Below, in pieces: positions 8,936-62,215 of a stretch of DNA of 64,000 nucleotides. How positions within the stretch are numbered: position 1 is the stretch's first letter; the number at the start of each line of letters is the position of its first letter. The stretch spans positions 62,001-126,000 of IMG/VR virus record IMGVR_UViG_3300031951_000001, one strand, 5' to 3'. Both the position numbers and the translations under genes were made by a program. The notes beneath the pieces were generated by a model, which saw only the letters and a program-made list of their open reading frames with translations, ran no database searches and had not been told where the DNA came from.

Positions 8936-10528
8936 ATGGATAAAAAAATAAAAATTTTAATTTTATCGTCATTGGTCATAATGTCGGTATTTTTCATGGT
9001 TAAAACTGCGGTTTTAATCGAAATTATATCTAGCTCAAAATTAACAAGAGGAACGGAATATGTTTGTTTTTTATTTTTTATTCCTGTTTTTTACAATTTA
9101 ATTAGACACTACATTAAAACTAATAGGTTATATAATCAGTTTAAAGAATTTGAAAATTTTGTTGATACCTCAGTACTGGTTAGTAAGGCTGATAAGAATG
9201 GTAAGATAACATATGTTAACCAAAAATTCAGTGAAGTGTCAGGGTGGAGTTTAGAAGACGCCGCAGGTAAAGACCACCGAATAGTTAACTCAGGATTTCA
9301 TCCCAAAGAAATGTGGGAGGAAATGTATAAAACAACAATCAAAGATAAAAAAATATGGAATGCTGTCGTAACTAACAAAGCAAAGGATGGTCATCTATAT
9401 TGGGTTGATTCATATATTAAAGCCGAATTTGAAGAAAATGGAGACCTAAAAGGTTTTATGTCAATAAGATATGATGTTTCAGAAGTTAAGAAAAAAGAAC
9501 TTGAGATTAGAAACAGAATGAATGCCATCAATCAATCTAATGCGGTTATTGAGTTTGATTTGAGTGGTAATATAATGTATGCCAATAAAAATTTCTGTGA
9601 TACTATGGGATATACTATGGAAGAAATTGTGGGAAAACATCATAGTATATTTTTAAATGAGGAGTATTCAAAGTCACAGGAGTATAAAGAATTTTGGGAT
9701 ACTTTAAGAAGTGGTGATTTCATATCTGCTCAATTTATGAGAATTAAAAAGAATGGTGATGAAATTTGGTTACAAGCCACATATAACCCAATCTTTGATA
9801 ATGATGGTAAAGTTATTCGAATTATGAAAATTGCGATTGATATTACTGACAAAGTTTTACAATCCCAAGAGATAGAAAAAAAGAATACTTATTTGGAACA
9901 TGCCGCAAAAATATTGAGACACGACATGCACTCGGGTATTAACACTTACATGCCGAGGGGGTTAAGTTCTTTGGAGAGAAGATTAAAAACTGAAGACATT
10001 GAGAATTTAAAAATTGAAGCTCCGATTAAAATGATTAAGGAGGGATTAAGACACTCACAAAAAGTATATAAGGGTGTTTATGAATTTACCAATTTGGTTA
10101 AAAAGGATGTTGTGTTAAATAAAGCTGAATGTAATTTAAGAGACATATTAAATGATTATCTATCATCAACCGCATATCATAGTCAGGTTATTATTGAAGA
10201 ATTACCAACCATAGAAGTTAATGAAGCATTATTCTGTACTGCGGTAGATAACTTAATTAGGAATGGATTGAAGTACAATGATTCTGAATCAAAATTTGTA
10301 AAAATATACATGGAAGGTGATGAGTTAATGGTTCAGGACAATGGACGAGGTATAACTCAAGAAGATTTCGACCACTTATCAAAACCATACACAAGAAAAG
10401 AAGGACAAAAAGAGTCAGGAACTGGACTCGGATTAAACATATGTGTGGCGATATTACAAGAACACAAGTTTTTGGTAAGATGCGAGAAAAATGAGATAGG
10501 AACTAAACTGAAAATAAAAATAAAATAA
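8936..10528 (+). CDS. membrane-anchored PAS-PAS sensor histidine kinase
   Basis: Two N-terminal TM segments; two PAS/PAC domains; H-box LRHDMH, N-box NLIRNGLKY, G1 DNGRGI, G2 GTGLGL. Confidence 0.9.
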   Translation: MDKKIKILILSSLVIMSVFFMVKTAVLIEIISSSKLTRGTEYVCFLFFIPVFYNLIRHYIKTNRLYNQFKEFENFVDTSVLVSKADKNGKITYVNQKFSEVSGWSLEDAAGKDHRIVNSGFHPKEMWEEMYKTTIKDKKIWNAVVTNKAKDGHLYWVDSYIKAEFEENGDLKGFMSIRYDVSEVKKKELEIRNRMNAINQSNAVIEFDLSGNIMYANKNFCDTMGYTMEEIVGKHHSIFLNEEYSKSQEYKEFWDTLRSGDFISAQFMRIKKNGDEIWLQATYNPIFDNDGKVIRIMKIAIDITDKVLQSQEIEKKNTYLEHAAKILRHDMHSGINTYMPRGLSSLERRLKTEDIENLKIEAPIKMIKEGLRHSQKVYKGVYEFTNLVKKDVVLNKAECNLRDILNDYLSSTAYHSQVIIEELPTIEVNEALFCTAVDNLIRNGLKYNDSESKFVKIYMEGDELMVQDNGRGITQEDFDHLSKPYTRKEGQKESGTGLGLNICVAILQEHKFLVRCEKNEIGTKLKIKIK

Positions 10529-10536
10529 AAAAAACT

Positions 10537-10968
10537 ATGATTGATTCAATTTTACTGGTAGATGACGAGGATTTATTCCATTTAGTGTTTGAAGATAGTT
10601 GTTCACTTCTTGATATAACATTATCTTTAAAAAGTTTAAATAGTTCAGATGAGGCAGCCAAATTATTTGAGAAATGGCAATCAAACAGTGCCGACAAACC
10701 TGAATGTGTGTTTGTTGATTTGAATATCATTGGGTCTTCCTTTGATGGTATTGAACTTATTAGAAAGATTAACTTTGAATACGGAAATAATGTTGTGATT
10801 GGAATCATTTCATCATCAAACGAACCTGAAGAACAGGCAAAGGCAATTCAATCTGGTGCTCAATTTTGGATTATAAAATCAGACGAGATTGAACCACGAT
10901 TAGAGGAGTTTAAGAAGGATTACGAAGGATATAAAAATAGAACAGCCCCATTTAAGATTTACAAATGA
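10537..10968 (+). CDS. single-domain response regulator (receiver)
   Basis: ILLVDDED, phosphoacceptor VFVDLN, ISSS, WIIKS. Confidence 0.88.
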   Translation: MIDSILLVDDEDLFHLVFEDSCSLLDITLSLKSLNSSDEAAKLFEKWQSNSADKPECVFVDLNIIGSSFDGIELIRKINFEYGNNVVIGIISSSNEPEEQAKAIQSGAQFWIIKSDEIEPRLEEFKKDYEGYKNRTAPFKIYK

Positions 10969-12086: not shown

Positions 12087-12326
12087 ATGAAAACAATTCT
12101 TATATCAGTATTTTTTAGAATCATTTTTTTAGATTCACAAACGGACGAAACTTTGACAGGTGTTAAAGTTGAAACTAATCAGGGTGTATATTTTTCTAAT
12201 TTGGATGGTGAAGTTTTTATACCAACAGAGGAAGAAGTTCTATCTGTAAGTTATGTTTCTTACGAAACAAAAAATGGTGTCACCCTTTCGAATGACACCA
12301 TTATGTCTTTGAGTCAAATTCAGTAA
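12087..12326 (+). CDS. small carboxypeptidase-regulatory-like domain protein
   Basis: DSQTDETLTGVKV..SNLDG..VSYVSYE pattern. Confidence 0.55.
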   Translation: MKTILISVFFRIIFLDSQTDETLTGVKVETNQGVYFSNLDGEVFIPTEEEVLSVSYVSYETKNGVTLSNDTIMSLSQIQ

Positions 12327-12329
12327 TTT

Positions 12330-12497
12330 TTACTTTTTGAAAGAATTTTTATACTCCTCGGTACCAAATTTTTTCCATTCCCAATTCCCGTAAAAGTCGG
12401 GATTTTCAACTGAACATTCACCTGAAGATTTGTATTCGGATAAGAACTTATCCGACATTTCTTTGGTGTATCTATTTTTGACCTCAAAATTTTTCAT
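12330..12497 (-). CDS. small hypothetical protein (55 aa, not in ORF track)
   Basis: MKNFEVKNRY..FYGNWEWKKFG; abuts the stop of the upstream gene. Confidence 0.5.
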   Translation of the reverse strand: MKNFEVKNRYTKEMSDKFLSEYKSSGECSVENPDFYGNWEWKKFGTEEYKNSFKK

Positions 12498-13355
12498 TCA
12501 AAACTTATTTACATCACCGTAATTCATGTGTAATTCATCGTGTTCGGCTTTCATCATTTCGTAAGCTCGAGCCATTCGAGTCATTCCGATACCGCCACCA
12601 AATCTTTTGAAGAATTTGTGAGACAAGAATTCTTCCAATTCCTTCTCAACCCTTTCTTTACCAAACAATTCAAACAATTTGGCCGAATAACCACCATTTT
12701 CAATAGTATAGAACATTTCTCTCATTTCATCAACATCACAACTTCTTTCGGCCGAACCAATTGTTTCTTGACCATAAAGAATAACATCCACTTTGTTGAA
12801 TTTATCTCCCTCACCCGACTTCATATTCCAGAATGGGTTTGTTCTAACGGGGAAATTCTGTAATGACACTACACTACCTTTTTCATTCCACATTCTTGTT
12901 TCGTGCTCGTTCTCCAAAATCGGTACACCACCATATTCTTCACAAACATCGTCATAATTCACTTCAACAGGTGAATCAAAACCTAAAAACGCAAGTAATT
13001 CAGATTCTAATTTAAGTAATTCCTTCATACCACCCTTTGACTCGAACTCAAACATTGGGAAGATTAATTCGTGACGACCTGGGATTGGGTCTTTTTCTTG
13101 TCTGTACGATGTTGAGATACAGAACACACCTGGCCATTCAGGATTTTGTAACAATTCATACTCTAACCACATTTGACCTGTTTGTGGTAATGGCCAAATT
13201 TGACCTTGGTACTCAAACGTTGTGATTGAGTGTGGATTCTCACATGCTGCGAGAATTGATAATCTTGATTGGGTCGGAACCTCAAGAAAACCTTTGTTTA
13301 GAAAAAAGGTCCTCATCTTTTGGACCAACTCGTGATAAACTTTTGTGTTTTTCAT
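12498..13355 (-). CDS. stand-alone class IIb aaRS-like catalytic domain (AsnRS paralog; possible asparagine synthetase)
   Basis: Motif 1 FFLNKGFLEVPT, LPQTGQ, motif 2 SYRQE..GRH..FPMFEFE, ETIGSAER, motif 3 GGGIGMTR; no anticodon-binding OB domain. Confidence 0.8.
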   Translation of the reverse strand: MKNTKVYHELVQKMRTFFLNKGFLEVPTQSRLSILAACENPHSITTFEYQGQIWPLPQTGQMWLEYELLQNPEWPGVFCISTSYRQEKDPIPGRHELIFPMFEFESKGGMKELLKLESELLAFLGFDSPVEVNYDDVCEEYGGVPILENEHETRMWNEKGSVVSLQNFPVRTNPFWNMKSGEGDKFNKVDVILYGQETIGSAERSCDVDEMREMFYTIENGGYSAKLFELFGKERVEKELEEFLSHKFFKRFGGGIGMTRMARAYEMMKAEHDELHMNYGDVNKF

Positions 13356-13368
13356 ATTACTTTAGGGT

Positions 13369-13393
13369 AAAAAAAAACCTCCCGAAGGAGGTT
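13369..13393 (-). terminator. leader (attenuator) terminator 13 nt upstream of the AsnRS-like start codon
   Basis: Minus strand AACCTCC-TTCG-GGAGGTT followed by T7; no long upstream minus-strand gene to terminate. Confidence 0.75.
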
Positions 13394-13397
13394 ACGT

Positions 13398-13427
13398 TTA
13401 TTTATTATTTATTAAATTCTTGTTCAT
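13398..13427 (-). CDS. putative Asn-rich leader peptide MNKNLINNK
   Basis: ATG AAC AAG AAT TTA ATA AAT AAT AAA TAA; starts 6 nt after a TATTTAT motif and ends 4 nt before the terminator stem. Confidence 0.5.
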   Translation of the reverse strand: MNKNLINNK

Positions 13428-13499
13428 TTTGAAATAAATACGAGATAAAGTTGAAAAAATAAAGTAATCACTTAAAATTTTTTTTGAGTATTTATTAGT

Positions 13500-14657: not shown

Positions 14658-16523
14658 ATGGGTAAAATTATAGGTATTGATTTAGGAACAACAAATTCGT
14701 GTGTTGCCGTTATGGAAAGCGGCGAACCTGTTGTGATTACAAACAGTGAAGGAAAAAGAACCACCCCTTCAATTGTAGGTTTTGCGAATGGTGGTGAGAG
14801 AAAGATTGGTGACCCGGCTAAACGTCAATCAGTTACTAATCCTGACAAAACAGTTTATTCTATCAAACGTTTCATGGGAGGCAGTTTTGATGAGAGTAAA
14901 AAAGAAATTAAACGAGTACCTTACAAGGTAGTTAAAGGTGACGGTAATACTCCTCGTGTCCAAATTGAAGACAGGAAGTATTCACCACAAGAAATCTCGG
15001 CAATGGTTCTCCAAAAGATGAAACAAACTGCTGAAGATTATTTGGGCGAAACTGTAACAGAGGCGGTTATCACGGTACCGGCGTATTTCAACGACGCTCA
15101 ACGTCAGGCGACTAAAGAAGCTGGTGAAATCGCGGGTCTTACCGTTAGACGTATAATTAACGAACCAACTGCGGCGGCACTTGCTTACGGTCTTGACAAA
15201 CAAGGTAAAGACATGAAAGTTGTGGTGTTCGACTGTGGTGGTGGTACTCACGACGTATCAGTCCTTGAATTGGGTGATGGTGTATTTGAAGTATTGGCAA
15301 CTGATGGTGACACTCACCTCGGTGGTGATGACTTCGATAACGTAATCATTGACTGGCTCGTTAAAGAATTCCAAGATGAAAACGGACTTGATTTGACCAA
15401 AGACCCAATGGCACTTCAACGTCTCCGTGAAGGAGCTGAAAAGGCAAAAATTGAGTTGTCAACTTCACCATCAACAGAAATCAACCTACCTTACATTATG
15501 CCGGTAGATGGTGTTCCAAAACACCTTGTTCGCACAATGACAAAGGCAAAGTTTGAGCAACTTGTTGACAGTTTGGTACAACGTACAATCGCACCGTGTA
15601 AGTCAGCTCTCAAAAATGCCGGTTTGAAACCTGCGGACATTGATGAAATTATCTTGGTTGGAGGCTCAACTCGTATTCCGGCAATCCAAGAAGCGGTTAA
15701 AAAATTCTTCGGTAAAGAACCATCAAAAGGAGTTAATCCTGACGAAGTTGTGGCACTCGGTGCAGCAATTCAGGGAGGTGTACTCGCAGGGGATGTTAAA
15801 GATGTATTGTTACTTGATGTGACTCCACTATCACTTGGTATTGAAACTCAAGGTGGTGTATTCACAAAACTCATCGAGGCAAACACAACAATCCCAACTA
15901 AAAAGTCCCAAGTGTTCTCAACGGCGGTTGATAATCAACCATCAGTAGAGATTCACGTTCTACAAGGGGAGAGAGCAATGGCTCAAGACAACCGAACAAT
16001 TGGTCGTTTCATTTTGGACGGACTACCACCAGCAATGAGAGGTGTTCCACAAGTTGAAGTTACTTTTGACATCGATGCCAACGGTATTATCAATGTATCG
16101 GCGATGGATAAGGCAACCAACAAACAACAATCAATCCGTATTGAATCATCGTCAGGTCTTTCAAAAGAAGAAATCGAAAAGATGAAACAAGATGCGGAAA
16201 TGAACGCAGAGGCGGACAAAAAATCACGAGAAGATGCCGACGCTATTAACCAAGCGGATTCTTTGGTATTCCAATCCGAAAAAACCATGAAAGATTTGGA
16301 GGAGAAGATGACCGAAGAACAAAAAACCCAACTTGCTGAAGCAATATCAGAATTGAAGACATCAATCGCTGAAAAGGATATTGAAAAGGTAAGAAACGGT
16401 ACTGGTAAATTGGCGTTGGTCGCTCAAACGATTACTCAAGGAATTTATAGTCAAGGAGACGAAGGTCAAGTTAGCGACCCTGAAGTTTCAGACGTAGATT
16501 TTGAAGAAGTAAAACCAAGTTAA
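14658..16523 (+). CDS. dnaK: molecular chaperone DnaK (Hsp70)
   Basis: [50 protein letters not shown]. Confidence 0.98.
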
Positions 16524-18571: not shown

Positions 18572-19006
18572 ATGTCTAAAATTGTAAGATTGACAGAATC
18601 TGATTTAAAAAGAATTATCGAAATGGTCTCTTTGGAGATGAAAAAAAACTTAACTGAATCTGTTGAGTCAAAATCAAGAATTATCTATGAAGATGCATAT
18701 GGTAGCGTTGAGGAAACTGATTTTGTGGTCAGTGATTTATTAAGTGAAGCTGAATATAAAGGTAGAAAAGTACAACTTGGTAAAATCATGCAGGGTGACG
18801 TAAAGAAATTCAAAGTTTATGTTAAAAACGATAAAGGTAATGTGGTTAAAGTTAATTTTGGATTTGGGGGCTCGTCGGCCAAAGGTAAAAGAATGGTAAT
18901 TAAAAAAAATAATCCGGCAAGACGTAAATCATTCAGAGCAAGACACAACTGTGACAATCCTGGACCAAGATGGAAGGCCAGATATTGGGCGTGTCGTACT
19001 TGGTAA
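18572..19006 (+). CDS. basic phage protein with RLTESDL leader
   Basis: KKFKVYVK..KVNFG..RRKSFRARHNC..ARYWAC..W; begins MSKIVRLTESDLKRII. Confidence 0.7.
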   Translation: MSKIVRLTESDLKRIIEMVSLEMKKNLTESVESKSRIIYEDAYGSVEETDFVVSDLLSEAEYKGRKVQLGKIMQGDVKKFKVYVKNDKGNVVKVNFGFGGSSAKGKRMVIKKNNPARRKSFRARHNCDNPGPRWKARYWACRTW

Positions 19007-20014
19007 TTACTTATCGTATCTTTTACGGGCGTTTTCTGTTATGAACACAAAATCAGAATATTTGAATGACTCAAGATTTTTTGAATTGGTATAAGACATT
19101 GCCGACCTCAAATAATCCTTAAAGTTTTCAGTCCAACCCGTTAATGAGTATTCGACTTTATTCATCCGATGGACACCCTCGGATGTTTTAATTTTACCTC
19201 GACCCCATTTTTTCTGAACCTCCTTTGTACTCATACCTCTAAACTTTTTGTAGAAATACTTTCTCATAAATGGATATTTTTCCCAAATTTTAGTAGCCCG
19301 TTCTTTGGATAATTTAAACTTACCAAACAACAGAGTATCTGAACATGATTCCAAAGTTTTATTCAACATACCTCCTAACATCACATAGTCGGCACCTAAA
19401 GCAAGGGCTTTAATAATGTCATCATAATTTTTAAAACCACCATCGGCAACAATTTTAGAGTTATAACCCCACTGTTTTTTAATTTCAAAACATTCCTTAA
19501 TCAAAGACGCCATGGGATAATGGACACCAGTATTTGCCGATGTTAAACAACCACTACCACCACCGATACCAACACGAATATATTTTACACCAATCTCGGC
19601 AAATTTTTCATACGTCTTTGGGTTGGCAATATTACCAATCATCAGTTCTCCATATGGGTATTGTTCCATAAATCTTTTGGATAGATTATATAGTTTTTCC
19701 ATATGACCGTTGGCAATATCAACCAGTATTTTTGGTAGTACCGAACACTTGGTATTTACCAATTTCTCAAATTCATCTAATGATATAGATTTGAAACCTG
19801 TATAAGTCGGCTCCATTCCCCTTGGGTAACATAGAACCATGTTTTCTTGCCAAAAATCGATAGAACTTGTGTAATCAATAACAGTATCCATTGGTGACAC
19901 CATAAGGGGTAAATGTTTAGAATCTGTCAAAATATCAATCTCACTACGAGACGAAATTGATGAGATGGTTTCAGGAACCAATGTGATATCTTTGAAATCG
20001 AACTTTTTATCCAT
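19007..20014 (-). CDS. GMP reductase / IMP dehydrogenase family protein
   Basis: SPMDTV, DIANGH, RVGIGGGSGCLT, ADGG, VMLGGML, FRGMS, SAMSY. Confidence 0.88.
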   Translation of the reverse strand: MDKKFDFKDITLVPETISSISSRSEIDILTDSKHLPLMVSPMDTVIDYTSSIDFWQENMVLCYPRGMEPTYTGFKSISLDEFEKLVNTKCSVLPKILVDIANGHMEKLYNLSKRFMEQYPYGELMIGNIANPKTYEKFAEIGVKYIRVGIGGGSGCLTSANTGVHYPMASLIKECFEIKKQWGYNSKIVADGGFKNYDDIIKALALGADYVMLGGMLNKTLESCSDTLLFGKFKLSKERATKIWEKYPFMRKYFYKKFRGMSTKEVQKKWGRGKIKTSEGVHRMNKVEYSLTGWTENFKDYLRSAMSYTNSKNLESFKYSDFVFITENARKRYDK

Positions 20015-31949: not shown

Positions 31950-32084
31950 AGTCAAGTGGCGGAAATGAAAGAGTACTCTTCAGGCAGACGCGACGCATGG
32001 TTATAGCAGCGTGGGTTAAAAAGCATCGTTTCGATGTGGTTACTATAATGACACCCCGTGAAGGTTCGAACCCTTCCTTGACTA
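31950..32084 (+). ncRNA. expanded tRNA-like RNA (135 nt)
   Basis: Acceptor AGTCAAG/CTTGACT, T-arm GAAGG-TTCGAAC-CCTTC, Leu-type D-arm with insertion, non-canonical centre; own TATATTTG promoter at 31931. Confidence 0.7.
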
Positions 32085-41358: not shown

Positions 41359-43389
41359 TTATGACCCCTTCTTCTTTCTTACCTTTTTAGTCTCGATAAT
41401 TTTGACATTACCTTCTTCCGCGACTAACTCATATTCCTTTTCTTCGGATATGTTTCCTTTTAATACTTCTTCAGAAATATAATCTTCTATTTTATCTTGG
41501 ATTGCCCTTTTAAGTGGACGAGCTCCATATGTTTCATCAAAACCAACTTCAGATATTAAATCGATAATTGAATCCGTGAAATTAATTTGATATTTCAAAC
41601 CACTTAATCTTTTAGATAATTTATTCAATTCAATTTTAACAATCTCGGCAATTTGTTCTTTCTTGAGATTATTGAAGACAATTATTTCATCGATTCGGTT
41701 AAGGAATTCAGGTGCGAAGAATTTCTTCAATTCTTTTTTCAATATATCCCTTTTGTATTCTTCTTCAATGTACGTATTTGTTCCAGATTTAAATCCAATC
41801 CCCGTACCAAAATCTTGTAACATTTTAGCCCCAATGTTTGAGGTCATAATAATGACACAATTCTTGAAGTTGATTTTTCTACCCAAACCATCGGTGATAT
41901 GACCATCATCCAATACTTGTAACAGTGCTGAAAAAATATCTTTGTTTGCCTTTTCAATTTCGTCAAACAATACCACAGAATAAGGTTTGTTTTTCACTTG
42001 TTCTGTAAGTTGTCCTCCTTCATCATAACCAACATATCCGGGAGGAGCTCCAATCAAACGAGAGATTGTATGTTTTTCTTGGAATTCAGACATATCAACT
42101 CTGATAAGGCTGTCCTCACTACCAAATATTTCTTTGGCAAGTTGTTTTGCGAGTAATGTTTTACCAACACCAGTAGAGCCCAAGAATATAAATGACCCAA
42201 TTGGTTTGTTAGGGTCCTTGATACCCAAACGATTTCTTCTGATTGATTTTGAAATTTTGATTACCGCTTCTTCTTGACCAATAACTTTTCCTGAAAGATT
42301 TTTCTCTAATTCTGTCAGTAATTTTGTTTCATCGGAGTTTAGTTTTGAGATTGGAATTTTGGTCATATTTGATACAACCTCATATACCAATTCTTCGGTC
42401 ACATCTCGTTTTGATAACAACAAATCACTCTCAAATTTCTTTTTCTCATCTTCAAGTTTTGATAGGATTTTCTTTTCCTTATCTCTCAAATTTGCGGCTT
42501 CCTCATAGTTTTGTTTTTTAACAACATCTAACTTTTGTTGTTTAATATCTTGAGCCTGCTTCTTCAAATCATCAATAATCTCCGGCATCTTAATCTCAAC
42601 TTGACTACGAGCACCAACTTCATCAATGATGTCAAAGGCTTTATCAGGAAACTCACGGTCTGTAATATATCGTTCGGCCAAATCAACGCACAAACTTAAA
42701 ATTGGGTCTGAATATGATACTTTGTGATATGTTTCATATTTGTCCTTTGTATTTTTTAGAATTTGAAGTGTTTCGGCCTTTGTTGCGGCATCCACGACAA
42801 CCTTTTGGAAACGACGCTCAAGGGCCCCATCCTTTTCAAAGTTTTTACGATATTCATCATTGGTTGTTGCCCCAACACATTGAATTTCTCCACGAGCAAG
42901 TGCCGGTTTGAAGATATTGGAAGCATCTAATGACCCCGACGAGTTACCGGCTCCTACAATAGTGTGAATTTCGTCAATGAAGACAATAATATTTGGATTA
43001 CTTTGTAACTCCTCAATAATCACCTTCATACGTTCTTCAAACTGACCACGATACTTTGTACCGGCAACAATTGAAGTCATATCTAAAGATACAATTCTTT
43101 TGTCCTGTAGATTTCTTGGGCAATCTCCTTCAAAGATTTTAATTGCTAATCCTTCGACAATTGCGGTTTTACCACAACCTGGCTCACCAATGATAATTGG
43201 ATTGTTCTTTTTTCTTCTTGAAAGAATTTGAGCTATCCTTGTTATTTCTCGTTCTCTACCGACCACAGGGTCAATTTTACCTTGTTCTGCAAGTTTAATT
43301 AAATCCCTACTAAAATTATCTAGTACAGGGGTACCACTATCACTAGTTTGTTTTGATTTTTTTCCATCATTATCCGCAGATTCTATCAT
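41359..43389 (-). CDS. ClpC/ClpB-family AAA+ ATPase lacking the Clp N-domain
   Basis: Walker A GEPGCGKT and GSTGVGKT; FIDEIH; UVR-like YEEAANLRD; GAPPGYVGY; GARPL. Confidence 0.93.
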   Translation of the reverse strand: MIESADNDGKKSKQTSDSGTPVLDNFSRDLIKLAEQGKIDPVVGREREITRIAQILSRRKKNNPIIIGEPGCGKTAIVEGLAIKIFEGDCPRNLQDKRIVSLDMTSIVAGTKYRGQFEERMKVIIEELQSNPNIIVFIDEIHTIVGAGNSSGSLDASNIFKPALARGEIQCVGATTNDEYRKNFEKDGALERRFQKVVVDAATKAETLQILKNTKDKYETYHKVSYSDPILSLCVDLAERYITDREFPDKAFDIIDEVGARSQVEIKMPEIIDDLKKQAQDIKQQKLDVVKKQNYEEAANLRDKEKKILSKLEDEKKKFESDLLLSKRDVTEELVYEVVSNMTKIPISKLNSDETKLLTELEKNLSGKVIGQEEAVIKISKSIRRNRLGIKDPNKPIGSFIFLGSTGVGKTLLAKQLAKEIFGSEDSLIRVDMSEFQEKHTISRLIGAPPGYVGYDEGGQLTEQVKNKPYSVVLFDEIEKANKDIFSALLQVLDDGHITDGLGRKINFKNCVIIMTSNIGAKMLQDFGTGIGFKSGTNTYIEEEYKRDILKKELKKFFAPEFLNRIDEIIVFNNLKKEQIAEIVKIELNKLSKRLSGLKYQINFTDSIIDLISEVGFDETYGARPLKRAIQDKIEDYISEEVLKGNISEEKEYELVAEEGNVKIIETKKVRKKKGS

Positions 43390-43436
43390 AACTGTTTTTT
43401 TTCTAATAATAACCATTATTTTTTAAAAAAAAAGTT

Positions 43437-43679: not shown

Positions 43680-43709
43680 CAATTAACTCAACTCAAATAT
43701 TTATGAGTG

Positions 43710-45923
43710 ATGAGTAATTTAAAAAAGATTTTATCAAGTTTTAAGGTTAGAGAATCTTTAAATCCTAAAATTTGGAAAAAAATTGATGGTACGGTTAAAA
43801 TGAATCCAGAAGTTAGGGCAGCCCTTTTGGATATTGCTAATGATTTTATAGAGTACCTTAAAGTTGAAATTGTGGTTACGGATGTAATCATGACGGGGTC
43901 TTTGGCTAATTTTAATTGGTCAAGTTTCTCTGATATTGATTTACACATAGTTGCTGATTTCAGTCAATTTCCTGAAGAACAATTGGACCTTTACAAAGAA
44001 CTTTTTAATCTAAAAAAAACTTTATACAACGACAAACATGATATAACTATTTTTGGTTATGACGTTGAGTTATATGTTCAGAACGAAACCGAATCTCACT
44101 TTAGTAGTGGAGTTTATTCCGTTTTATTTGATGAGTGGTCAAACAAACCAAAAAAAGAAAATGTAAAAATTGATACATCATTGATTAAAACAAAAACAAA
44201 TCAATGGATGGATATTATCGATGGAGTTATTGAGAATGTATCTGACGAACCGATTGATAAGGCAAAACAAATCATCAAAAAATATAAAGACAAACTTAAA
44301 AAATATAGAACTTGCGGTCTTGAAAAACAGGGTGAATATTCTGATGAAAATCTAGTCTTTAAGGCTTTAAGAAGAAATGGGTATATTGAAAAATTACACA
44401 GTTTTGAAGACAAACTTATCGACAAAACTTACACTCTAAAAGAGGCTTCCACATCGATTGGAGGACCATTCAAAACAGATATTGAGAATGGTCCATCAAA
44501 TCACTCCAAAAGAGCATTTGGTAATTGGCAGTCAGATAACGCTTGGGACATATTTGCCCCTCCTGGTAGTGTGGTAAATTCTTACACTGAAGGTAAAGTG
44601 ACTAAAATAAGAAATACTAATAAAAGGTCAGGAAAAGTTTTCGGAACCCAAGTTAGTATTAAAGGCACTGGAGAATATCCTGATATATTTTACACTCACT
44701 TAAAGAATGTAAAACTTAAACCTGGTGATACAGTAAGATTAGGTGATTATATTGGTGAAGTCACAGAATGGTGTAAGGACGAATCATGTAAGGAAATGCA
44801 TGGAGGAACTCACGTACATTTAGGACTTCCAAAAGGAAGACATTTAAGAGAGTTACTTACTAATTCTGATAAAATATTTACGGGAAGCGAGTCTTCATCA
44901 CCATCGAAGGAAGATTCCACCGGACTAGAAATAACACCATCAAAAGAATTATCTGGAACTGAGGAAGTAAATTTTGAAAATTTTGTAGATAAGTTATCTC
45001 AACTGAAAAATTTAATCAAACCTCTAAAAAACCTAAAATCTGAGGGGTCATCGATACCATTTGATTCAAACGTTGAAACATTACAAACCGCTTTACAAAT
45101 TTTAGGTTTTTCACTGCCAAAATGGGGTGTGGATGGTAAGTTTGGTAATGAAACAGAAGCGGCTGTTAAAAAATATCAACAGTCCATTGGGTTAGAAGAA
45201 ACAGGAATAATATCACCATATGATATTGAAAAATTGGTTTCTTTGGTATCGACTACAATAGAAAAGAATCCAGATGCGGTTGGTGATGTACAAAAAACTA
45301 AGGTGGAAACTATGCCTGATGGGCCAAAACCGAATGAAATGTCACCTTCTGAAGTATCATCTACTTCAGATAATGAGTATGCGATAATTAGACCTAATGG
45401 ATACAAAGGAAATAGAGTTCACGTATTATTTGGAGGTGCTCACACTTCAGGTTATTCCCCAAATAGTGCTAAACCACAAAATATTAGAAAATATATTGGT
45501 GTAATGACACCTTATGCAAATAATATTATTATTGTTGTAACTCATCACCAAAACACTTTGGCAAATGTTAGACAATATGTTAAAGAAAAATTTGGTGGAA
45601 TTGTTACGTCTATCGCCGGATTTTCACAAGGAGGCAAGGAAGCTTGGGAACATGCTGACGACAGTACTTTGAGTTTGGTTGGTTTGATTGACCCATCAAC
45701 TTATGAGACAGGTTTAACTTTTGGTTCAAATACTATTCTTTATTGTGACCCTAAAAATTGGGGAACTTCAGGTTTTTATGGTCAAACTAGAAAAAGACTT
45801 GAATGGTATTGTGCGAACAAAAATCAATATGCTGGGCGAGTAGTATGCTTCAATAAAGGAGGTACTCACATGAATTTCGAGATATTAAAATCTTTTTACA
45901 GTCAATACGGAGGTAAGATGTAA
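43710..45923 (+). CDS. multidomain fusion: nucleotidyltransferase + M23-like + PG-binding + alpha/beta hydrolase
   Basis: GSLANFNWSSFSDIDLH; FYTHL..THVHLG; LQTALQILG..VDGKFGNETEAAVKKYQ; AGFSQGG. Confidence 0.75.
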   Translation: MSNLKKILSSFKVRESLNPKIWKKIDGTVKMNPEVRAALLDIANDFIEYLKVEIVVTDVIMTGSLANFNWSSFSDIDLHIVADFSQFPEEQLDLYKELFNLKKTLYNDKHDITIFGYDVELYVQNETESHFSSGVYSVLFDEWSNKPKKENVKIDTSLIKTKTNQWMDIIDGVIENVSDEPIDKAKQIIKKYKDKLKKYRTCGLEKQGEYSDENLVFKALRRNGYIEKLHSFEDKLIDKTYTLKEASTSIGGPFKTDIENGPSNHSKRAFGNWQSDNAWDIFAPPGSVVNSYTEGKVTKIRNTNKRSGKVFGTQVSIKGTGEYPDIFYTHLKNVKLKPGDTVRLGDYIGEVTEWCKDESCKEMHGGTHVHLGLPKGRHLRELLTNSDKIFTGSESSSPSKEDSTGLEITPSKELSGTEEVNFENFVDKLSQLKNLIKPLKNLKSEGSSIPFDSNVETLQTALQILGFSLPKWGVDGKFGNETEAAVKKYQQSIGLEETGIISPYDIEKLVSLVSTTIEKNPDAVGDVQKTKVETMPDGPKPNEMSPSEVSSTSDNEYAIIRPNGYKGNRVHVLFGGAHTSGYSPNSAKPQNIRKYIGVMTPYANNIIIVVTHHQNTLANVRQYVKEKFGGIVTSIAGFSQGGKEAWEHADDSTLSLVGLIDPSTYETGLTFGSNTILYCDPKNWGTSGFYGQTRKRLEWYCANKNQYAGRVVCFNKGGTHMNFEILKSFYSQYGGKM

Positions 45924-61633: not shown

Positions 61634-62215
61634 ATGAGGTTTATTTTATTCTCGATTTTATTATTTTTACAAATTAGTGTTTTTTCACAGTTAAGAGATT
61701 CGGTCTATGTTAAGACTGAAATTTTTAATATTGTCTATTCTGAAAAATTACAACAACCTAAGTGGGTTGAATATAACGTGATATGTCACGATGGTAAAAT
61801 ATCTAGAAAAGGGTTAGATTTTTATCCTATAAAGGGAATAGTTACTTCTACAAATGAAGATTATGAAAATAATATTTATGATAAGGGCCATCTAGCACCC
61901 GCAGCGGACTTCAATTGTAATCAAGACTATCTAAAACAAACATTTTCTTACTTGAATTGTGTTCTACAACACGAAAGATTAAATAGAGGGGTTTGGAGAT
62001 TACTAGAATCTCGTGAGAGAGAACTCTCAAAACAATATAAGGTATCTGTTGAAATAAGAATTAATTACAGTAAAAATTCAAAAGTCCTGTCAACAGGGGC
62101 CACAGTTCCCGATTCTTTTACTAAGACAATTATGTATAATAATAAAAAAGAAAAATATTTCTTCAAAAATGAAGAACCGAAATCATCTGACCCTAATTTA
62201 TATAGGGTTAATTGA
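61634..62215 (+). CDS. secreted DNA/RNA non-specific endonuclease
   Basis: Signal peptide; YDKGHLAPAADF, TFSYLN..LNRG.W..LE. Confidence 0.9.
   Translation: MRFILFSILLFLQISVFSQLRDSVYVKTEIFNIVYSEKLQQPKWVEYNVICHDGKISRKGLDFYPIKGIVTSTNEDYENNIYDKGHLAPAADFNCNQDYLKQTFSYLNCVLQHERLNRGVWRLLESRERELSKQYKVSVEIRINYSKNSKVLSTGATVPDSFTKTIMYNNKKEKYFFKNEEPKSSDPNLYRVN

Follow-up and report, generated by a model that had tools for sequence, protein, structure and literature searches.

A predicted asparaginyl-tRNA synthetase-type catalytic core in a jumbo freshwater phage, preceded by an asparagine-rich leader ORF and a terminator

Why would a phage carry the catalytic core of a class IIb aminoacyl-tRNA synthetase that lacks an anticodon-binding domain, and why is its gene preceded by a short ORF rich in asparagine codons? 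The locus lies in a 64,000-nt window (positions 62,001 to 126,000 of IMG/VR record IMGVR_UViG_3300031951_000001; coordinates below are those of the window), which is part of a 322,372-bp T4-like jumbo phage record from lake metagenomes. An initial annotation had described the gene as an anticodon-less class IIb synthetase paralog with an Asn-rich leader, and had inferred that it is an Asp plus ammonia ligase supplying Asn for an AT-rich, Asn-rich proteome. The observation was confirmed. The interpretation was upheld only in part: asparagine is the theme, but an AsnA-like ligase is not supported, and the enzyme probably uses asparagine rather than making it.

An uninterrupted ORF was found at 12498..13355 on the minus strand (285 aa, ATG start, TGA stop; protein P0001). 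It matches Pfam PF00152 (class II D/K/N synthetase core) at 47.8 bits against a cut-off of 25, with residues 3–261 covering profile positions 21–288 of 308, which is the catalytic core only. No N-terminal OB-fold anticodon-binding domain is present, as the protein starts 2 residues before the core match and the AF2 model (pLDDT 96.2) is a single domain. Motif 2 reads SYR85QE..GRH..FE103FE105 and motif 3 reads FGGGIGMTR260. The best PDB matches of the model are AsnRS catalytic domains (2xgt, 2xti, 1x54, 8tc9), while archaeal AsnA structures (3rl6 and 3reu) gave a TM of about 0.70.

To place the protein among characterized families, it was scored against equivalog HMMs, and it fell below every cut-off by a wide margin: 21.3 and 23.5 bits for AsnRS (TIGR00457 and NF003037; cut-offs 342.6 and 414), 14.1 bits for archaeal AsnA (PRK06462 models; cut-off 322) and 19.4 bits for EpmA (TIGR00462; cut-off 286.9). 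Bacterial AsnA (TIGR00669) gave no hit in the NCBIfam scan. The best family member reached only E 1.5e-9 against archaeal AsnA. In a PDB profile search, the family profile hit AsnRS at 1e-15 and archaeal AsnA (3p8t) at 2e-7, and E. coli AsnA was not detected. Archaeal AsnA sequences were also sought in 151 genomes of one archaeal phylum and none was found, and one Enterobacter genome lacked AsnA, so E. coli K-12 asnA was used for alignment; relationships given here rest on profile and structure rankings rather than on a tree.

The substrate pocket was compared by alignment with real sequences, including AsnRS from three genomes, and not with a ligand-bound structure. QTGQMWL64E65 aligns with AsnRS VSGQLx(A/V)E, whereas AspRS (QSPQLFKQ) and E. 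coli AsnA (HSLAKWKR) keep the lysine that holds the distal carboxylate (AspRS Lys198, AsnA Lys77); the corresponding EpmA motif is TSPEYHMK, and the pocket is not Lys-type. C38-E39 aligns with DCEGAG, FE103FE105 with EPE, and ETIGSAER204 with GELVGGSQR. Q58, Q61, R85, E197 and R260 were also taken as key residues, and the residues that bind the alpha-amino group in synthetases are kept. The catalytic arginines and glutamates are conserved in most family members, although some have a degenerate motif 3. The signatures are thus those of AsnRS, which suggests that Asn is the ligand rather than the product. Differences from AsnRS are a changed motif-2 loop (xxPxxGRH against NSNTSRH), a new conserved helical segment before motif 3 (residues 208–245, with F215, G221, Y223, L227 and F231) and the absence of the C-terminal IPFPR strand.

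The family is very abundant. More than 8000 close homologs were recovered, a number that reached the scoring cap, and there are 674 clusters at 50% identity. The family occurs in freshwater jumbo phages, marine cyanophages, huge phages and giant viruses, yet members are annotated only as "tRNA ligase" or "aspartyl/asparaginyl-tRNA synthetase". The protein matches PHROG 29758 at E 2.8e-94 (residues 4–265 on profile positions 7–265 of 267), and tblastn gave 50–52% identity to P-SSM2, P-SSM5 and P-SSM7, whose gene is the cyanophage T4-GC194 "tRNA ligase". Sullivan et al. 2010 (PMC3037559) list it only as a sporadic "host-like" gene, and a literature search found no paper on the function of the family. 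Cellular members are rare: a search with protein P0183 found nothing, a fumarase bait gave no clear taxon, and 5 genomes and 201 genomes of one order gave only one partial hit.

The leader was examined next. The mini-ORF MNKNLINNK* (ATG AAC AAG AAT TTA ATA AAT AAT AAA TAA; 4 Asn in 9 codons) lies at 13427..13398 (−). It is followed by an intrinsic-terminator hairpin, AACCTCCTTCGGGAGGTT, at 13393..13376 (−), with arms AACCTCC and GGAGGTT and loop TTCG, then by a run of seven T at 13375..13369, and then by a 13-nt spacer, ACCCTAAAGTAAT, at 13356..13368 (−), immediately before the ATG of the gene. The spacer (10–47 nt and A-rich in relatives) is too short to hold a promoter, so the gene must be transcribed through the terminator. 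Upstream, at 13431..13441 (−), is a promoter-like box, GTATTTATTTC; relatives have TATATTTATT(T/A)C, often with TTGAC(T/A/C) about 17 nt upstream. The box is conserved at a fixed distance from the leader ATG in 43 related loci and ends 3–8 nt before it, so that the leader mRNA is probably leaderless or nearly so. Promoter function is inferred, and a simple sigma-70 scan of the window did not score the box.

On its own, a 9-codon ORF in AT-rich DNA could be chance, but comparison with relatives shows that it is not. Most close relatives have the promoter-like box, a short ORF, a covarying terminator hairpin with a T-run, and then the gene. Across 15 non-redundant leader ORFs of relatives, Asn codons make up 48/214 in frame (22.4%) against 14/199 (7.0%) and 7/199 (3.5%) out of frame (Fisher p 7e-10), and none of 2000 composition-preserving shuffles reached the observed count. 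Relatives carry about 24 different hairpin sequences with at least 10 different stem cores, all perfectly paired and followed by T6–T9, usually then GCCC. In this genome it is the only such leader. When the leader RNA was folded, the terminator hairpin was the only stable structure, the rest being A/U only, and no antiterminator was found. Of 66 Asn codons, 59 lie more than 12 nt upstream of the stem core, beyond the reach of the ribosome to the hairpin, whereas 16 of 19 stop codons lie within reach. A search of Rfam gave only sub-threshold noise, such as FopS (31.7 bits against 56) and Phe_leader (19.6 against 55).

Downstream, a 55-aa ORF at 12330..12497 (−) abuts the gene (TGAATG junction) and is probably co-transcribed. 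It was considered as a substrate or partner and rejected, as it has no Pfam, NCBIfam or PHROG match and tblastn found it only in the closest relative (locus L016) among 191 related loci. A strong intrinsic terminator with a 13-bp stem and a T-rich tail, at 12273..12302 (−), closes the transcription unit. Contigs from metatranscriptomes carry pieces of the ORF (12577–13202) with 0–3 differences per 150 nt, but not its flanks; as they cannot show transcript ends or strand, expression is only weakly suggested.

Two contexts emerged among relatives (loci are numbered L). An unusual long tRNA-Asn(GUU) lies directly downstream, 9–20 nt after the gene, in 71 of 72 cyanophage-like loci with room, and in five loci of another lineage (L212 and L214–L217); one example lies at L003:4796–4882. 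It is structured and covarying (19 of 25 pairs show compensatory changes), with G73, U1:A72 or A1:U72 and an invariant GUUU in the anticodon loop; it has U37 and sometimes C33, which is odd for a decoding tRNA. This phage has no tRNA-Asn: ARAGORN, Rfam tRNA and a covariance model built from 27 partner tRNAs found only tRNA-Leu and odd long tRNA-like elements, and 80 close relatives have none beside the gene. The second context is linkage or fusion with DHODH (PyrD) and UMP synthase (UMPS), in 7 of 8 viral PyrD clusters. A fusion of PyrD to the synthetase core (P0127) was seen on 7 contigs, next to a UMPS gene, and a fusion of the core to PyrF (P0151) lies next to PyrE and PyrD. Unfused clusters of PyrD, UMPS and the core occur in L205, L211, L329, L331 and L336, each in a different gene order; in L205 the cluster sits next to the RNR small subunit. 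The core is present in 5 of 6 viral UMPS loci that also have PyrD and in 0 of 11 that lack it. No ATCase or E. coli-type DHOase was found in 825 kb of these flanks searched with E. coli PyrB and PyrC, a search of limited sensitivity for other DHOase types. In this phage PyrD, PyrE and PyrF are absent, and in 18 other viral records carrying the core no PyrD match exceeded the cut-off, with one weak DHO_dh match (E 1e-4) in one record.

Taken together, what the comparison of sequences shows is a family of free-standing class IIb cores, essentially virus-borne, here preceded by an Asn-codon-rich leader ORF whose stop codon abuts an intrinsic terminator through which the gene must be transcribed. 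Translation of the leader, the binding of L-asparagine and ATP and the formation of asparaginyl-adenylate are inferred, the last two from alignment with AsnRS; having lost the anticodon-binding domain, the AsnRS motif-2 loop and the C-terminal strand, the enzyme would not select tRNA by its anticodon. Also inferred, from geometry, is that read-through requires a ribosome to get past the Asn codons and sit on the 5′ arm of the hairpin, so that the gene would be made when Asn-tRNA is plentiful and shut off when it is scarce, the logic expected for an enzyme that consumes asparagine. This assumes a ribosome reach of about 12 nt and transcription-translation coupling in a host that is not established. 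We consider an Asn-binding adenylating enzyme gated by an Asn leader likely. More tentatively, we infer from the fusions and clusters that the activated asparagine may be turned into dihydroorotate, the substrate of DHODH, giving a one-enzyme entry into pyrimidine synthesis that bypasses carbamoyl-phosphate synthetase, ATCase and dihydroorotase. In a chemically plausible route, the alpha-amine of Asn-AMP would capture CO2 to give the N-carboxyanhydride, and the side-chain amide N would then attack C2 to give L-dihydroorotate and AMP. In this phage the product would feed host enzymes to supply dTTP and UTP for an AT-rich 322-kb genome. The proposed chemistry has no known enzymatic precedent and no paper on it was found, the pyrimidine link rests on relatives 47–61% identical, and the strongest numerical signal in the family, the downstream tRNA-Asn, is explained only indirectly, as a buffer for the Asn drain or as a competing or alternative acceptor.

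Each rival accounts for part of this evidence. A minimal AsnRS that charges tRNA-Asn without reading the anticodon, either the phage-borne long tRNA or, in this phage, that of the host, is possible but less likely; it would keep up Asn-tRNA supply for an Asn-rich proteome or replace a host tRNA or synthetase targeted by defence. It fits the AsnRS-type active site, the closeness to AsnRS in sequence and fold and the adjacent tRNA, and leader-peptide attenuation of synthetase genes has a precedent in E. coli pheST. However, the anticodon is the main AsnRS identity element and no domain to bind it is present, the motif-2 loop and C-terminal strand differ, this phage has no tRNA-Asn, the partner tRNA seems odd for decoding, the PyrD and PyrF fusions are unexplained, and the leader geometry would give positive feedback. 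The AsnA-like synthetase of the initial annotation (Asp + NH3 + ATP gives Asn) appears unlikely. It shares its architecture and size with archaeal AsnA, a free-standing core of about 290 aa, its motif 3 (GGGIGMTR) resembles that of E. coli AsnA (GGGIGQSR), and both the Asn-rich leader and the tRNA-Asn of relatives are compatible with it; as the proteome is moderately Asn-rich (7.0% Asn, AAT:AAC 4401:1703), the demand argument is reasonable but not decisive. Against it stand the failed AsnA profiles, Leu64 in place of the lysine, a leader predicted to shut off under Asn starvation, the opposite of a biosynthetic attenuator, and the recurrent PyrD/UMPS linkage, which an Asn synthetase does not explain.

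Equally unlikely is an ATP-dependent dihydroorotase analogue, in which the beta-carboxylate of N-carbamoyl-L-aspartate would be adenylated and the ureido nitrogen would close the ring, making the dihydroorotase step irreversible. This is a direct, intramolecular analogue of AsnA chemistry and draws on the same fusions and clusters, but it gives no role to asparagine and leaves the leader, the tRNA-Asn and the pocket without the carboxylate-binding Lys unexplained; giant-virus hosts already have dihydroorotase inside CAD, so the gain would be small, and the viral clusters carry no ATCase to feed it. Least likely is a non-catalytic or signaling role, as a HisZ-like Asn/ATP-binding regulatory subunit of pyrimidine enzymes, a GluQRS-like enzyme that puts Asn on a nucleotide of the tRNA anticodon loop, or an Ap4A-type dinucleotide synthase. 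Synthetase paralogs without anticodon domains do have such roles (HisZ with a phosphoribosyltransferase, GluQRS on Q34 of tRNA-Asp), GUUU is invariant in the loop of the partner tRNA, and some members have a degenerate motif 3. But the catalytic residues are conserved in most members, no single one of these roles explains both the tRNA and the PyrD contexts, and hosts ranging from cyanobacteria to protists are hard to reconcile with a subunit that binds host enzymes.

Three independent lines point to asparagine: the AsnRS-type pocket, the Asn-codon leader and the tRNA-Asn next to homologs. Three independent comparative signals now make the function of the family directly testable. If asparagine is turned into dihydroorotate, this would be a new metabolic route and a new class of viral auxiliary metabolic gene linking amino-acid nitrogen to nucleotide supply. 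If the enzyme is a minimal AsnRS with its own tRNA, it would be a natural anticodon-independent orthogonal pair. In either case the Asn-codon leader with a bare terminator is, to our knowledge, an undescribed kind of attenuator, found in phages that may infect Bacteroidota-like hosts. In the broadest reading, which remains doubtful but is not excluded, viruses from cyanophages to giant viruses would carry a one-enzyme route from asparagine to the pyrimidine ring that escapes the feedback control of the bypassed enzymes; in its most radical form the long tRNA-Asn, unfit for decoding, would be a dedicated carrier, loaded with Asn by host enzymes and used by the viral enzyme as the activated substrate, a tRNA-dependent entry into nucleotide synthesis with expression gated by an Asn-sufficiency attenuator.

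Among known systems, the AsnRS catalytic domain is closest, sharing the class IIb fold with motifs 1–3, the DCEGAG-like Cys-Glu, the QxxQxx(hydrophobic)E signature, the E-x-E of motif 2 and the R of GGSQR, but differing in the domain, loop, helical segment and C terminus described above. Archaeal asparagine synthetase A (AS-AR; 3p8t, 3reu, 3rl6) and bacterial AsnA are also free-standing class II cores of about 290–330 aa that adenylate a carboxylate without tRNA, but are much more distant by profile, and AS-AR derives from AspRS (Blaise et al. 2011, reportedly), whereas this family derives from AsnRS. EpmA (PoxA/GenX), GluQRS and HisZ are likewise cores freed from anticodon reading and recruited to another acceptor or role; no EF-P link was seen, and these are precedents only, not relatives closer than AsnRS. 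As in the trp, his and pheST attenuators, a short ORF enriched in codons of one amino acid is followed by an intrinsic terminator upstream of the regulated gene, and as in the pyrBI leader of E. coli, a closely following ribosome would suppress termination. Here, however, no antiterminator or pause hairpin was found, the leader is probably leaderless mRNA, the regulatory codons are Asn, for which no attenuator is known to us, and the predicted sign is induction by plenty. The cyanophage T4-GC194 genes (P-SSM2 PSSM2_198, P-SSM7 PSSM7_129; PHROG 29758) belong to the same family, with 50–52% identity over 93% of the protein, but have no Asn leader and instead carry the long tRNA-Asn directly downstream.

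The coordinates 13355 to 12498 on the minus strand were found to hold an uninterrupted ORF of 285 aa. In a profile search it matched only the catalytic core of class II Asp/Lys/Asn synthetases, PF00152 at 47.8 bits against a cut-off of 25, with residues 3-261 covering profile positions 21-288 of 308, leaving no room for an OB-fold. The AF2 model, built on 56 diverse relatives, was a single confident domain (pLDDT 96.2). The window is not cellular: it corresponds to bases 62001-126000 of a 322,372-bp viral record that CheckV rates complete and that carries a T4-type terminase, portal and Gp23 capsid protein. The DNA recurs in lake and freshwater metagenomes. Contigs from metatranscriptomes carry parts of the ORF but prove nothing about transcript ends. 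No alternative genetic code was used. Bacteroidota-like features, such as the MORN_2 repeat, A-rich start regions and a TAnnTTT-like box, are only hints as to the host. GC content is 34%, and the predicted proteome is 7.0% Asn, with AAT far commoner than AAC.

At 14658-16523 (+) and 41362-43416 (-) the phage encodes a DnaK-type Hsp70, identified from its sequence, and a ClpB-like double AAA+ ATPase (AAA_2 at E 2.8e-68, ClpB_D2-small). A 738-aa protein at 43707-45920 (+) combines a nucleotidyltransferase domain, an M23 peptidase and a peptidoglycan-binding domain. At 8936-10968 (+), a PAS-domain sensor histidine kinase-like ORF (530 aa) is directly followed by a response-regulator-like ORF (143 aa), as read from the translations only. 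The tRNA genes of the phage (28379-28451, 32254-32418 and 36942-37015, +) are Arg(TCT), Leu(TAA) and two with CAT anticodons, plus Glu(TTC) elsewhere in the genome; these read A/T-ending codons and fit the AT-rich genome, and there is none for Asn. A set of long (87-135 nt) tRNA-like elements was also found, at 31950-32084 (+) and, outside the window, at 18921-19007, 19094-19188, 19311-19408 and 19485-19605 (-) of the phage genome (G000:C1). These elements share the acceptor AGTCA(A/G)G...C(C/T)TGACT-A, a Leu-like D arm and a normal T arm, but have large insertions where the anticodon and variable arms should be. One passed the Rfam tRNA cut-off (39.8 bits), while ARAGORN called them only with introns allowed or at lowered thresholds; they may be intron-bearing tRNAs, pseudogenes or something else.

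The protein failed every curated model it touched, scoring 23.5 bits against a cut-off of 414 for AsnRS, 21 against 353 for non-discriminating AspRS, 19.4 against 287 for EpmA and 14 against 322 for archaeal AsnA. It belongs instead to a very large family of its own: a word search returned at least 8000 scored homologs, the best 120 being 81-99% identical, an exhaustive search found 674 clusters at 50% identity, and PHROG 29758, annotated as unknown function, matched at E 2.8e-94. Named members are the "tRNA ligase" of Prochlorococcus phages P-SSM2, P-SSM5 and P-SSM7 (T4-GC194) and genes in the 735-kb and 484-kb huge phages. Many relatives lie in giant-virus MAGs and one lies in a podovirus-like Tara contig. 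One distant member (P0183, 38% identical; L105:8001-8849, where L numbers denote related loci) lies in a bacterial context between lpxB and the genes for ribosomal proteins L28 and L33, and only one partial hit was found among 201 genomes of one order sampled. In the family alignment, some members (P0134, P0137, P0198, P0252, P0166 and P0227) have lost the motif-3 arginine (for example RFSGSVNISALEHA) or the motif-2 arginine, and may be inactive paralogs. Sullivan et al. 2010 (PMC3037559) only list the gene, and a literature search found no functional study.

Upstream of the gene, on its own strand, lie a conserved box, GTATTTATTTC, the mini-ORF MNKNLINNK* at 13427-13398, the hairpin AACCTCC-TTCG-GGAGGTT at 13393-13376, and seven further T followed by 13 nt to the ATG. 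The spacer cannot hold a promoter, so the gene is transcribed through the terminator. Of 66 related loci with enough upstream sequence, 52 showed a terminator in the same place and 43 showed the box directly followed by an ATG-initiated short ORF. The hairpins differ in sequence (about 24 variants, at least 10 stem cores), but all pair perfectly and are followed by T6-T9. A minority of close relatives (L033, L037, L045, L054, L056 and L065), including 436-465-kb phage contigs, lack the Asn leader and terminator and instead have a GC-rich hairpin followed by A10 and TTTCT just before the ATG. The leader peptides are not conserved as sequences, but Asn is their commonest residue. In 15 non-redundant leaders, Asn codons made up 48 of 214 in frame against 14 of 199 and 7 of 199 in the other frames (Fisher p 7e-10), and none of 2000 composition-preserving shuffles reached 48 (shuffle mean 24.6, sd 4.5). 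The frame dependence argues that the ORF is translated. In the whole 322-kb genome, only five strong terminators sit within 60 nt upstream of an ORF, and only this one has such a leader. The observation of an Asn-rich leader in the initial annotation therefore holds, on evidence far stronger than the single sequence could provide.

The leader RNA has no second hairpin and is A/U only. In 19 leader types, 59 of 66 Asn codons lie more than 12 nt upstream of the first G/C of the 5′ arm (median -24), whereas 16 of 19 stop codons lie within 12 nt of it or inside the stem. A ribosome held at an Asn codon would therefore leave the terminator free, while a ribosome that reaches the stop codon would cover the 5′ arm. 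Without an antiterminator to invert the logic, read-through should need fast decoding of Asn codons, and the gene would be ON when Asn-tRNA is plentiful and OFF when it is scarce. This is a model-based inference, which assumes a ribosome reach of about 12 nt and coupling in an unidentified host. The predicted behavior is the opposite of what a gene that supplies Asn or Asn-tRNA would want, and suits a gene that spends Asn.

In P-SSM2, P-SSM5 and P-SSM7, the gene is followed within about 10 nt by an 87-88-nt tRNA-Asn(GTT). Among 80 cyanophage-like viral contigs, 71 of the 72 with room downstream have a tRNA there, and one further locus with less room also has one; across these 72 tRNAs, ARAGORN called 67 tRNA-Asn(GTT) of 83-94 nt. 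Five loci of another lineage, whose protein is about 59% identical to that of this phage, have it too (L212 and L214-L217). The tRNA is real, as 19 of 25 pairs show compensatory changes. As examined at L003:4796-4882, L005:3765-3852, L223-L302, L212 and L214-L217, it keeps Asn acceptor identity (U1:A72 or A1:U72, G73) and an invariant GUU, but also has a long variable arm, a Leu-like D arm, an invariant U at position 37 where tRNAs have a purine, and in some copies C33. This is unusual for a decoding tRNA, and the linked tRNA may be unrecognised in cyanophage annotations. No such tRNA was found anywhere in the genome of this phage, and 80 close relatives have none beside the gene.

The other recurrent context, like the tRNA, comes from relatives 47-61% identical and not from this phage. 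P0127 (661 aa, seen on 7 contigs) is a dihydroorotate dehydrogenase fused to this domain (hereafter X) and sits next to a PRTase-OMP-decarboxylase (UMPS) gene, and P0151 is X fused to OMP decarboxylase and sits next to PyrE and PyrD. Unfused clusters occur in L205/L320 (RNR small subunit, PyrD, UMPS, X), L211, L329, L331 and L336, each in a different order. Among 17 distinct viral UMPS loci, X lies within 10 kb in 5 of the 6 that also have PyrD and in none of the 11 that lack it (Fisher about 0.001). Counting the two fusion loci, 7 of 8 viral PyrD clusters carry X. No ATCase or E. coli-type dihydroorotase was found in 825 kb of these flanks, and searches of this phage found no PyrD, PyrE or PyrF.

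Any explanation has to cover an AsnRS-type pocket, the loss of all tRNA-selecting parts, an Asn leader that reads as "on when plentiful", tight linkage to DHODH and tight linkage to an odd tRNA-Asn. The domain architecture, the in-frame Asn enrichment, the covarying terminators and the two gene contexts were established by sequence comparison, whereas translation of the leader, its regulatory sense, asparagine as ligand and every catalytic activity considered here are inferred. An AsnA-like synthetase explains the loss of tRNA-selecting parts, and the leader and the tRNA linkage only loosely. The initial annotation was partly supported, in that the core lacks an OB-fold and asparagine is a shared theme, but its specific proposal of an Asp plus ammonia ligase supplying Asn for an AT-rich, Asn-rich proteome was not supported, as the pocket and the leader point away from a gene that supplies Asn. 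A minimal AsnRS explains the pocket and the tRNA, and a dihydroorotase analogue acting on carbamoyl-aspartate explains the loss of tRNA-selecting parts and the DHODH linkage. An enzyme that activates asparagine and converts it to dihydroorotate would explain the first four features, and the tRNA only indirectly.

Dihydroorotate is formally Asn + CO2 - H2O. Aminoacyl-adenylates react with CO2 to give N-carboxyanhydrides, and attack of the side-chain amide on C2 of that anhydride would give dihydroorotate and regenerate the free α-carboxylate. All AsnRS first-step residues could then be kept, as observed. This model is therefore ranked first, but only tentatively, and the chemistry is hypothetical and has no known enzymatic precedent. 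The tRNA might buffer the Asn drain, compete as an acceptor when uncharged, or serve as a non-decoding carrier of activated Asn, ideas that are speculation.

To compare the family with known enzymes, a profile of the family was searched against the PDB, which ranked AsnRS at 1e-15, archaeal-type AspRS at 1e-14, archaeal AsnA 3p8t at 2e-7, LysRS at 4e-5 and EpmA-like 3g1z at 9e-4, with E. coli AsnA not detected. Foldseek gave the same order, with AsnRS structures leading the list (ranks 1-9, TM 0.70-0.75), AspRS structures interleaved from rank 10, and archaeal AsnA first appearing at rank 37. The family was then aligned with sequences taken from genomes, comprising three AsnRS, an Enterobacter AspRS and EpmA, and E. 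coli K-12 AsnA. Where AspRS has QSPQLFKQ and AsnA has HSLAKWKR, both with the lysine that holds the distal carboxylate, the viral family has QTGQMWL64E65, which is the AsnRS pattern VSGQLx(A/V)E. C38-E39 align with the AsnRS DCEGAG, E103 and E105 align with the AsnRS E-P-E, R204 aligns with the Arg of GGSQR, and R85 and R260 are the motif-2 and motif-3 arginines. On this basis, by alignment only, the ligand is inferred to be asparagine bound as in AsnRS, and not aspartate bound as in AsnA. What differs from AsnRS is everything that touches tRNA or closes the site: there is no anticodon domain, the motif-2 loop is different, a new conserved helical segment precedes motif 3, motif 3 is an AsnA-like GGGIGxxR, and there is no C-terminal IPFPR.
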